From Epithemia pelagica (taxonomy: Eukaryota; Protista; Bacillariophyta), in assembly GCA_946965045.2 (NCBI GenBank), contig OX459761.1, positions 1 to 64,000 of the forward strand: a stretch of 64,000 bases of DNA, written 5' to 3'. The stretch's first letter is position 1. Each line of letters opens with the position of its first letter. The notes beneath the pieces were generated by a model, which saw only the letters and a list, made by a program, of their open reading frames with translations, did not search any database and was not told the DNA's origin. The translations under genes and the position numbers were made by a program. This document shows positions 40,508 through 41,503 of the stretch, in pieces.

Positions 40508-40568
40508 TCAGAGTTTAATTGGGATTCCTCGTGTGACCTTTGAACGATCTCTTAAATTAAAATATTTA
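40494..40568 (+). pseudogene. 3' continuation of the split rep gene
   Basis: TNNTFQSLIGIPRVTFERSLKLKYL begins with the same TNNTF codons that end ORF339, in the same frame. Confidence 0.65.
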
Positions 40569-40984
40569 CCTATCAAGGTGGGACAAATCAGGAAGTTAAA
40601 TCAATTAATATATATAATGAAGAAGAAAATCGAATTGCAATCTTCAAACGATCTACAGGTGAATTTATGACATTTTGTGAGCCTAATGATGACGAACGAG
40701 AGGATCTACTAGAAACAGGAAACTTTGGAGGTCAATTTGGATGGTTCAGCGGTCAAGCGAAAAATGTTCCTCCAAAGGTTAAAGCAGAACAAAATGTTGC
40801 CGATGAAATTACGCCAATCGATAGCTTTGAGAGCCATGTGATGGGTATAACGCCTGCTCCTGCGTATGAATTTTCAAGCGTAGACGAAGGACAAAATCCA
40901 GGATTTACTCCACTGAATAGTTTCGATAGCGACGTTATGGGAATAACACCGTTAGATTCTTCATCATCGGACTATCAAATTTAA
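40568..40984 (+). pseudogene. Colicin D-like tRNase toxin, C-terminal half only, plus repeat tail
   Basis: TYQGGTNQEVKSINIYNEEENRIAIFKRSTGEFMTFCEPNDDEREDLLETGNF aligns by eye with the colicin D C-terminus (GTY...FN...VVIIKSNGEFLSGW...YLETGEL); includes the 105-aa ORF 40667-40984. Confidence 0.65.
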
Positions 40985-41004
40985 TTAACCTCAAGAAATA
41001 ATGT

Positions 41005-41472
41005 ATGATCAATATTAATTATAATCTAAAACGCCATATTGAATTATTAAAACAGGAAAAAAAAATTCTAAATGAAAAAAAATCTTTTTTGAAAGAAAAT
41101 CCAAAAGAAGCTTTAGAATTAATTAAATACGGCGCGAAAGTTAGTCAACATATTGTGTGGGAAGATCGATTTGAAATTGCTTCAATAATGGAAGACTTTT
41201 TGAGTAAAAAGATAAATGCGCATGAATTTCATGATAGTGTGTTTGGACTTCGTCGTAAGCATTCAGAGAAATGTAAAAGATTTCTATCAAAATTAGTTTC
41301 GGAAGAAATAAAAGATTTTTGTCCGAACAAAAATGCACATAAATTAAAAGGATTTTTATCGGCCTTGTATTTTGAATGCGAGCATTTTGAAACGAATTTC
41401 GATGAAGCCGAATTATATACTTCTATTGAAAATGGATTTTTTAAATTTCAAATAATTTTGAATGAAGAGTGA
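41005..41472 (+). CDS. Colicin D immunity (ImmD)-like protein, 155 aa
   Basis: FLSKKINAHEF...LRRK and LYFECEHFE match ImmD FLASKITAIEF...ERRR and LFMAAERFE; lies directly downstream of the toxin remnant. Confidence 0.65.
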   Translation: MININYNLKRHIELLKQEKKILNEKKSFLKENPKEALELIKYGAKVSQHIVWEDRFEIASIMEDFLSKKINAHEFHDSVFGLRRKHSEKCKRFLSKLVSEEIKDFCPNKNAHKLKGFLSALYFECEHFETNFDEAELYTSIENGFFKFQIILNEE

Positions 41473-41503
41473 TAAATTATATTACTCTTCATTCAAAATT
41501 ATT
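41451..41503. terminator. 20-bp inverted repeat at the end of ORF155
   Basis: AATAATTTTGAATGAAGAGT / ACTCTTCATTCAAAATTATT. Confidence 0.7.

Follow-up and report, generated by a model that had tools for sequence, protein, structure and literature searches.

Colicin D cleaves the anticodon loops of arginine transfer RNA (tRNA-Arg) between positions 38 and 39. The colicin and its immunity protein (ColD and ImmD; Protein Data Bank (PDB) entries 1V74, 1TFO, 1TFK and 5ZNM; Pfam families PF11429 and PF09204) are encoded on pColD-type plasmids of Escherichia coli by the adjoining genes cda and cdi. Here we describe a gene pair of related design in 64,000 nucleotides (nt) of plastid DNA from the diatom Epithemia pelagica (assembly GCA_946965045.2, contig OX459761.1, positions 1 to 64,000 of the forward strand), a stretch hereafter called the window. 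Between positions 40568 and 41472 the window carries the 3ʹ remnant of a ColD-like toxin gene and, directly downstream, an intact gene for an ImmD-like protein of 155 amino acids. We consider it probable that diatom plastid plasmids encode a ColD-type ribonuclease (RNase) toxin together with an ImmD-type inhibitor, and that this plastid genome holds an integrated, disarmed copy of such a plasmid with a surviving antidote.

The diatom pair and ColD/ImmD are alike in the folds predicted for toxin domain and immunity core and in the placement of the toxin gene ahead of the immunity gene on the same strand of a small plasmid. Intact diatom toxins also have a His in helix 1 and a Thr in strand 4 as candidate counterparts of the catalytic His and the Ser of ColD. 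They differ in several other respects. Sequence identity is only 14-22%, below all curated thresholds, and the diatom toxins have no receptor or translocation domains; they carry hydrophobic N-terminal segments, a C-terminal repeat tail and an insertion of ~10 residues between helices 1 and 2 of the toxin domain. The immunity protein has 155 residues, compared with 87 in ImmD, and includes an extra N-terminal helical part of ~55 residues. Finally, the diatom plasmid has no lysis gene, and its host is a eukaryotic organelle.

Nucleases of this kind also occur in bacterial Tox-ColicinD polymorphic toxins, such as CdiA-CT of EC3006 and Kp342, klebicin D and carocin S2 (PMC3482391, PMC9990079). 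These systems share with the diatom pair an N-terminal part for trafficking or anchoring, a linker, an RNase domain of the BECR fold and an adjoining immunity gene, and they likewise include degraded toxins beside surviving immunity genes ('orphan' cassettes). In contrast, the diatom toxins show no RHS, filamentous-haemagglutinin or secretion-system markers. The listed range of Tox-ColicinD covers several bacterial phyla, euryarchaeota and ascomycete fungi, but not plastids or stramenopiles (PMC3482391). Type II modules such as RelE/RelB, whose toxin also has a BECR fold, resemble the diatom system in pairing a plasmid-borne RNase with an inhibitor and in the expected penalty on loss. However, they combine a small soluble toxin with a labile antitoxin whose DNA-binding domain serves operon autoregulation, whereas in diatoms the toxin gene comes first, the toxin is large and has hydrophobic segments, and the antidote contains neither a helix-turn-helix nor a ribbon-helix-helix domain (Pfam).

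Small plasmids of pennate diatoms have been known since 1991, and their genes other than that for a serine recombinase are listed as hypothetical (PMC2873285, PMC8070900). Judged by published descriptions, pCf1/pCf2-type plasmids and their integrated copies (Cylindrotheca, Kryptoperidinium, Seminavis, Haslea) resemble the element described here in forming a circle of ~4-4.6 kb with serC and an open reading frame (ORF) of ~480-520 amino acids, and plastid-integrated fragments with truncated edge ORFs have been published as well. The same papers describe serC, label the remaining ORFs hypothetical and mention no toxin or immunity role (PMC2873285, PMC6608930, PMC8070900). Full-text literature searches that combined diatom or plastid plasmids with colicin, toxin-antitoxin, immunity protein or BECR returned nothing relevant, subscription-only literature being outside their reach. 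Within the openly searchable literature, this agrees with the initial annotation of the window, a reading of the DNA letters that knew of no such system in a plastid.

Predicted structures for two adjoining genes point to the two chains of one toxin-immunity complex

The upstream frame has 98 database homologs (E-values down to 1e-84) and the 155-residue protein has 154 (55-99% identity, E-values down to 1e-94), and therefore neither is a chance ORF. Both families were seen only in plastid genomes and plasmids of raphid diatoms, the named relatives being Nitzschia ovalis, Amicula, Seminavis robusta (chloroplast), Entomoneis and Haslea silbo. When the conserved toxin domain was used as the query of an exhaustive profile search, 327 proteins were gathered, many of them 350-470 amino acids long with the domain in the C-terminal half. 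In this search, proteins of 216-218 amino acids that had been candidates for full-length toxins turned out to be internal-start or partial calls of the 350-470-residue proteins. Two long profile matches, P0337 and P0351, are of the multi-stretch kind; P0337 is spurious, a translated tandem repeat. All analyses of intact proteins used natural homologs only.

Beyond diatoms, 185,579 genomes of bacteria and archaea were scanned for matching patterns without revealing a relative of the toxin, and a tblastn search of 72,556 plasmids with the toxin domain gave only a chance match (E = 9). The only immunity relative in the genome scan lies on a single 4-kb contig (L050; JBGCFD010000080.1, 4022 bp) binned to a Saprospiraceae metagenome-assembled genome. 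This contig, which carries an intact immunity homolog (66% identity), is most likely a diatom plasmid that was mis-binned into a bacterial genome.

The conserved toxin domain was modelled with AlphaFold2 from 19 natural intact homologs (predicted local distance difference test (pLDDT) 87, predicted template modelling score 0.83). The model runs helix, helix, four strands, helix, and it has the BECR fold, in which an N-terminal helix with the catalytic His lies on a four-stranded antiparallel sheet. When this model was compared with 350,542 PDB chains using Foldseek, the top five matches were all ColD tRNase chains (5ZNM_A, 5ZNM_B, 1TFO_A, 1V74_A and 1TFK_A), with E-values of 2.8e-4 to 4.5e-3, a probability of 1.00 and template modelling (TM) scores of 0.78-0.80 normalised to ColD. 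The sixth match has a probability of 0.06, and thus the ColD chains are the sole high-probability matches.

The AlphaFold2 model of the 155-residue window protein (pLDDT 94) is all-helical, a small bundle with ImmD topology. Among the same PDB chains, Foldseek ranks the ImmD chains 1V74_B and 1TFK_B first and second, with probabilities of 0.92 and 0.85, TM scores of 0.61 and 0.60 over ImmD, and 21-22% identity over 97 columns, although an E-value of ~0.9 makes this match weak standing alone. Both structure models rest on shallow alignments, of 19 and 24 sequences. The fold evidence gains its weight because two adjoining genes independently pick the two chains of the same crystal complexes.

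For comparison of sequence profiles, real ColD and ImmD sequences were taken from plasmid pO177C3 (cda and immunity genes; L051), in which cda was located with a 27-residue probe that matches cda with 100% identity in 32 plasmids. Building a ColD profile from the plasmid collection was abandoned because the diversity of the ColD domain is too low. The toxin-domain profile aligns with the ColD tRNase domain (hhalign, P = 0.003) with the sheet in register, such that GTYQGG..R pairs with GTYR..R and KSTGxFVTTC with KSNGEFLSGW. The immunity profile aligns with ImmD at P = 0.046 over 60 columns with 32% identity (FL.K I.A.EF ... RR ... KD..PN ... E.FE), and with an 11-member ImmD alignment at P = 0.008-0.01. 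The latter profile is shallow, the ImmD homolog search having returned only close enterobacterial relatives (64-100% identity), and it is the C-terminal ~100 residues of the diatom protein that resemble ImmD.

These alignments were controlled with 250 column shuffles for each target (ColD and ImmD) and with reversed and cross comparisons. None of the 250 shuffles reaches the observed score for either target (null 11.6-11.8 +/- 2.3-2.4, maxima 18.8 and 20.0, observed 20.5 and 23.5), and scores of 10-15, at the null level, were obtained for the reversed controls and for the cross controls, in which the toxin was compared with ImmD and the immunity protein with ColD. The proposal that the upstream gene resembles the ColD tRNase domain and the downstream gene ImmD, which the initial annotation had made from the letters of this one locus, is thus upheld by profile comparison and by Foldseek searches with monomer models.

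Recognition of the two proteins by curated family models, which the same annotation had looked to, failed. The best Colicin_D match in Pfam reaches 14.8 bits (E = 0.038) in one of 10 full-length toxins, compared with a gathering threshold of 25 bits, and no Colicin_D match was obtained for the window fragment or among 26 homologs at E <= 1. Colicin_immun does not match the window protein at E <= 10; it appears below threshold in 3 of 23 immunity homologs (best E = 0.019), amid noise matches of similar size. A sub-threshold match of toxin homologs to PBECR2 has E = 0.13. Pfam and NCBIfam searches with the toxin fragment, its 105-residue ATG-initiated ORF, an overlapping frame-2 ORF and the 155-residue protein gave nothing significant, and neither did the PADLOC defence models. 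When both proteins and both family profiles were run against PDB sequences with phmmer and hmmsearch, only noise was returned (for example, dynein regulatory complex subunit 7 at E = 0.34). Likewise, Foldseek searches of viral predicted structures produced nothing significant, with a phage 'Colicin D' at rank 32 (E = 0.5).

Sequence databases without a significant match, structural alignments with identities of only 14-22% and structures predicted from so few sequences are in keeping with a spurious resemblance, created by model artefact or convergence between two unrelated plasmid genes and the colicin complex. We regard this explanation as very improbable. Two independent models each rank the cognate chain of the same PDB complexes best, and for both proteins the profile alignments keep their register and score above all 250 shuffles. 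The expected helix bears the catalytic His in every family member, and the sub-threshold Pfam matches point to the same two families (Colicin_D and Colicin_immun).

The residues essential to ColD are K607, K608, H611, D614 and S677 (PMC3482391), of which H611, on an alpha-helix, is the general base (PMC9990079). Invariant in the diatom toxin family are Q39, K43 and H47, at positions i, i+4 and i+8 of the first helix, as well as T129 in strand 4. Extended hhalign alignments pair H47 with H611, K43 with K608 (or with K607 if a one-residue gap is omitted), Q39 with Q604 and T129 with S677. This pattern of residues appears compatible with an active RNase, without proving one. Enzymes of the ColD clan cleave differing tRNAs at differing sites (PMC9990079), and their cut specificity is therefore not transferable to the diatom toxin. 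For this reason, tRNA-Arg as a target, and with it the trnR(ACG) gene of the window (46459-46534, minus strand) that had been put forward as a candidate, is a guess.

Linkage and integrity of the gene pair

A metagenome scan anchored on the immunity protein identified 49 loci, 46 of which were assessable. In 39 of these 46, a toxin gene or a recognisable remnant of one lies directly upstream on the same strand, its end 20-76 nt away, and 12 of the 39 linked loci have a full-length toxin (375-471 codons). The gap between the two genes is 14-76 nt in related loci and 20 nt in the window. Three divergent full-length toxins that were looked up independently (P0264, P0330 and P0222) are each followed by a gene for a protein of 153-155 amino acids with 34-42% identity to the window immunity protein. 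The toxin-then-immunity order and the linkage that the initial annotation had described for the window alone thus recur in these 39 loci and three divergent pairs, with the immunity gene directly 3ʹ of the toxin gene.

One plastid contig (L003, with psbB at 706-2235) carries two complete tandem toxin-immunity units, at 4826-6468 and 9139-10904, which are separated by serC and a 520-residue ORF and whose toxins are only distantly alike. One of the three divergent pairs, in L054, adjoins rbcS. In the divergent locus L053, the pair is followed on the same strand by a gene (2357-3718) for a 453-residue AAA/STAND-like ATPase. At six loci (L010, L014, L033, L034, L040 and L044) an immunity gene or fragment is present but nothing recognisable of a toxin gene precedes it, and in L033 the immunity ORF is complete, making it a fully orphaned antidote.

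All 15 loci with an intact toxin also have an intact immunity gene, whereas among loci with a degraded or missing toxin the immunity gene is intact in nine and broken in 12. A broken antidote next to an intact toxin was seen at no locus. The integrity of the two genes is therefore coupled (Fisher's exact test, P = 2.6e-4, for loci that are phylogenetically non-independent and were found via the immunity gene).

Some of these loci bear on the idea that the ColD-like fold serves non-toxic plasmid housekeeping, such as RNA processing, replication or copy-number control, with the 155-residue protein as a regulator or chaperone. Intact pairs reside stably in plastid chromosomes near psbB (L003) and rbcS (L054), BECR-fold RNases are known in non-toxin roles too, and D614 of ColD is not conserved in the toxin family. 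Such a function is nonetheless improbable in our estimation, given that the two proteins each correspond to one half of a single, specific toxin-immunity complex, that gene order and spacing are as in toxin-immunity cassettes, that no intact toxin was seen without an intact partner, and that integrated copies repeatedly have a truncated toxin gene.

Both families are under constraint, as the ratio of nonsynonymous to synonymous substitution rates (dN/dS) across divergent lineages is well below 1 (~0.3 for the immunity gene and 0.13-0.29 for the toxin tail). Relative to its nearest relatives, the toxin remnant in the window has a dN/dS of ~1.0-1.4, based on few substitutions.

Architecture of the full-length toxins

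Full-length toxins comprise 390-472 amino acids, arranged as a hydrophobic N-terminal part, a Pro-rich linker, the ColD-like domain (~150 residues) and short C-terminal repeats. The N-terminal part has one or two hydrophobic segments of ~19 residues, the second of which directly follows a conserved [LV][RK]GG motif. This motif lies 90-170 residues from the N-terminus, ahead of the main hydrophobic segment (e.g. P0228 residues 155-182), and recalls double-glycine processing sites or the LRGG cleavage motif. At the C-terminus, after the nuclease domain, stand one or two copies of a NSFESDVMGITP-like repeat. The repeat, NSF(E/D)S(D/H)VMGITP, is nearly invariant across the toxin family and is found at 40830-40975 in the window as well as in homologs.

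A classical type II module is made less likely by the hydrophobic N-terminal part. The intact toxin is no small cytosolic protein, and its layout fits a bacteriocin or polymorphic toxin better than a type II addiction module. A bacteriocin-like or polymorphic-toxin-like system must therefore be weighed, in which the N-terminal part exports or anchors the RNase, the toxin acts on other compartments, plastids or cells, and the immunity protein protects only the producer. The succession of hydrophobic 19-mers, [LV][RK]GG, Pro-rich linker and toxin domain follows the modular order of such proteins, and ColD/ImmD are themselves a bacteriocin system of small plasmids. However, the 4.6-kb plasmid shows no gene for lysis or secretion, Pfam searches of full-length toxins revealed no trafficking domain, and an exit route is hard to picture for a plastid that lies behind four membranes. 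We view such a system as unlikely.

A disarmed ColD-like toxin gene and an intact ImmD-like gene in the window

The genes and junctions that make up the locus are as follows.

40494..40507, + strand: left copy of the 14-bp core ACTAATAATACATT, at the left junction of the putatively integrated plasmid; this 14-mer occurs exactly twice in the window
40494..40568, + strand: displaced piece of the plasmid's large ORF (ORF483 of L005), identical to L005 2698-2772, which continues the frame cut at 43529
40568, no strand: internal deletion junction, where L005 ~2772 is joined to ~4348 and where the alignments with L005, L003 and L009 diverge exactly
40568..40984, + strand: 3ʹ remnant of the ColD-like toxin gene (tblastn, 68% identity to P0228 residues 309-450)
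41005..41472, + strand: intact ImmD-like immunity gene, 155 amino acids (homologs, AlphaFold2 model, Foldseek and hhalign)
41450..41504, + strand: 25-bp hairpin closing the gene pair (folding energy, terminator-like scan; conserved in L005)
41786..42430, + strand: serC-type serine recombinase, 214 amino acids (Pfam Resolvase 1.9e-27, HTH_7 1.4e-6), colinear with L005 969-1613
42517..43536, + strand: 5ʹ portion (339 codons) of the plasmid's large ORF, which spans 483 amino acids in L005 and is here cut at the integration crossover; colinear with L005 from 1699 onward to the core; no Pfam family
43516..43529, + strand: right copy of the 14-bp core ACTAATAATACATT, at the right junction; plastid thiS starts at 43533

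The frame containing the toxin remnant is open on the + strand from 40556 to 40984 (142 codons). Its first ATG is at 40667, with no in-frame ATG ahead of it, and would yield 105 amino acids. The 155-residue ORF, which starts with ATG, follows at 41005-41472 on the same strand after 20 nt, as the initial annotation had reported for two same-strand neighbours. The start given there for the pair, 40568, coincides with the exact position at which similarity to the toxin gene of related loci begins. The upstream gene is real; rather than a small gene lacking a few residues, it represents only the last ~140 codons of a gene of ~450 codons. The closing hairpin had also been correctly noticed; its stem, however, is a perfect one of 25 bp, not 20 bp, at 41450-41504 (+), and overlaps the stop codon of the 155-residue ORF. 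Its folding energy is -29.8 kcal/mol, compared with -6.8 +/- 2.2 in shuffled sequences (z = -10.6; none of 200 shuffles as stable). A consensus scan classes it as terminator-like, a T-rich tail follows the stem, and the structure is kept in plasmid L005 (arms 595-627 and 633-665).

The window is colinear with L005, a contig of 4624 bp. Because the ends of this contig abut when laid on the window, L005 is considered a circularly permuted circle, and its colinearity supports the plastid-plasmid origin that had been proposed for the gene pair. The circle carries the immunity gene at 158-625, serC at 969-1613, an ORF of 483 amino acids (ORF483) at 1699-3150, five 22-nt repeats at 3281-3412 and a toxin gene that starts near 3454 and crosses the contig end. 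The repeats, five tandem direct copies of GGAGAAATTTCGAACGTGAGAT with an inverted partial copy, lie between ORF483 and the toxin gene and look like the iterons of a replication origin. Since ORF483 adjoins them, it may encode a Rep protein, although it has no Pfam match. Equating the toxin with ORF482/484 of the pCf plasmids was rejected, the 483-residue ORF beside the iterons in L005 being a different gene.

The core ACTAATAATACATT occurs at 40494-40507 and 43516-43529, and at no position in 100 shuffles of the window. To the right of the second copy lies plastid thiS, and to the right of the first copy are the bases that follow the core in ORF483 of L005. Such an arrangement is the signature of one crossover event, in which a circular plasmid recombined with the plastid chromosome at a 14-bp core that the two shared and that lies within ORF483.

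Colinearity breaks at 40568, where ~2772 of L005 is followed by ~4348 and ~1576 bp are missing. The deletion took the rest of ORF483, all five iterons and toxin codons 1-308, including the catalytic helix. Aligned to the modelled domain (DSSP), the remnant retains just the final two residues of strand 1, followed by strands 2-4, the closing helix, the Thr equivalent to S677 and the NSF(E/D)S(D/H)VMGITP repeats, and it has lost the hydrophobic N-terminal part, the linker and both N-terminal helices of the domain, and with them the invariant Lys and His. A remnant so reduced, with no start codon upstream, can no longer specify an active nuclease. In contrast to it, nothing is missing from the immunity gene, the hairpin or serC. 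The description of a disarmed toxin beside an intact antidote therefore stands: codons 1-308 of the toxin are deleted and the 155-residue ORF is full length.

Proposed function and its significance

From the anatomy of the locus, the fold-level homology, the linkage and the truncation described above, we infer RNase activity, toxicity, neutralisation, tRNA cleavage, plasmid addiction and a selective role for the pair, as follows. Positions 40494-43529 of the window represent an integrated, partly deleted copy of a small circular serC-type plastid plasmid, as in pCf1/pCf2. The intact plasmid has four genes, encoding the serine recombinase, the large ORF next to the iterons (possibly Rep), a toxin of ~450 codons and, 20-76 nt further downstream, an immunity protein of 155 codons. 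The ColD-like domain is predicted to act as a metal-independent RNase that cuts plastid RNA, most likely tRNA, and the co-expressed ImmD-like protein would bind and block it. In this way, the pair could penalise plastids or cells that lose the element or that are without the antidote. The plasmid entered the plastid chromosome by one crossover at the 14-bp core in the large ORF, and a deletion of ~1.58 kb after entry left a dead toxin tail and a complete immunity gene, an 'orphan antidote' that may still shield its host plastid from toxin encoded by free plasmids of this type.

A broader proposal is that diatom plastid plasmids, and the many plastid genomes that took them up, carry a working ColD-type RNase toxin with an ImmD-type antidote, which would be the first such system to be described in organelle genetics. 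We advance this only tentatively.

Several observations weigh against the preferred reading of the pair. Neither protein reaches a curated threshold, PDB sequence and profile searches are blank, and the scans of bacterial and archaeal genomes and plasmids revealed no bacterial relatives that could anchor function. The ImmD fold match, with E ~0.9, rests on rank and probability, and helical bundles match easily. Within the active site, D614 and one of the two ColD lysines have no conserved counterpart in the toxin family, and hhalign brings the N-terminal helix into alignment only when run in relaxed or global mode. The toxin domain does not stand at the extreme C-terminus, and the protein has hydrophobic N-terminal segments; if these were to place the RNase domain facing away from the stroma, plastid tRNAs would not be its substrate. 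The 9:0 asymmetry between loci that kept only the immunity gene and loci that kept only the toxin barely exceeds neutral decay, given that the toxin is a threefold larger target (0.75^9 ~0.075), and these loci, collected through the immunity gene, are not phylogenetically independent. Finally, the window immunity gene has a dN/dS of 0.4-0.6 relative to its nearest relatives, calculated from very few substitutions, and this copy may be young rather than selected.

If the preferred reading of a plasmid-borne toxin and antidote is correct, two of the four plasmid genes would gain a concrete, testable role, and the gene pair, supported by computational evidence only, provides the first functional idea for plasmid genes that have so far been hypothetical. 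A bacterial conflict system would thereby be extended into a eukaryotic organelle, and a mechanism for plasmid persistence would be at hand. On the broader proposal, the persistence of cryptic plastid plasmids would be explained, and orphan antidotes in plastids, such as that at 41005-41472, could be understood as anti-addiction devices directed against the toxin of free plasmids, and a mechanism would be offered for the recurrent combination of a dead toxin and a surviving antidote in plastid genomes. For the engineering of diatom plastids, a pair active in plastids and a mapped integration core might also serve in selection or maintenance. Only a disarmed remnant is present in the window, and its interest lies in the family that it reveals.

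Neighbouring genes and junction features

The integration site lies between trnH and thiS in a diatom-type plastid genome. On its left are rps4 and trnH(GUG), and on its right are ThiS-like, syfB-like and psb28-like ORFs, trnQ, trnR(ACG) and groEL. The trnI/trnA pair of the ribosomal RNA spacer is at 17986-18135.

The frame-2 ORF at 40467-40670 (67 amino acids) is a chimera whose middle (..TNNTFQSLIGIPRVTFERSLKL..) continues the 339-residue ORF that ends at 43536, after which it runs out of frame into the toxin remnant. At the right junction, the ThiS-like ORF (43533-43736) begins 4 nt past the core, and the stop codon of the truncated 339-residue plasmid ORF is supplied by plastid sequence that overlaps the thiS start.

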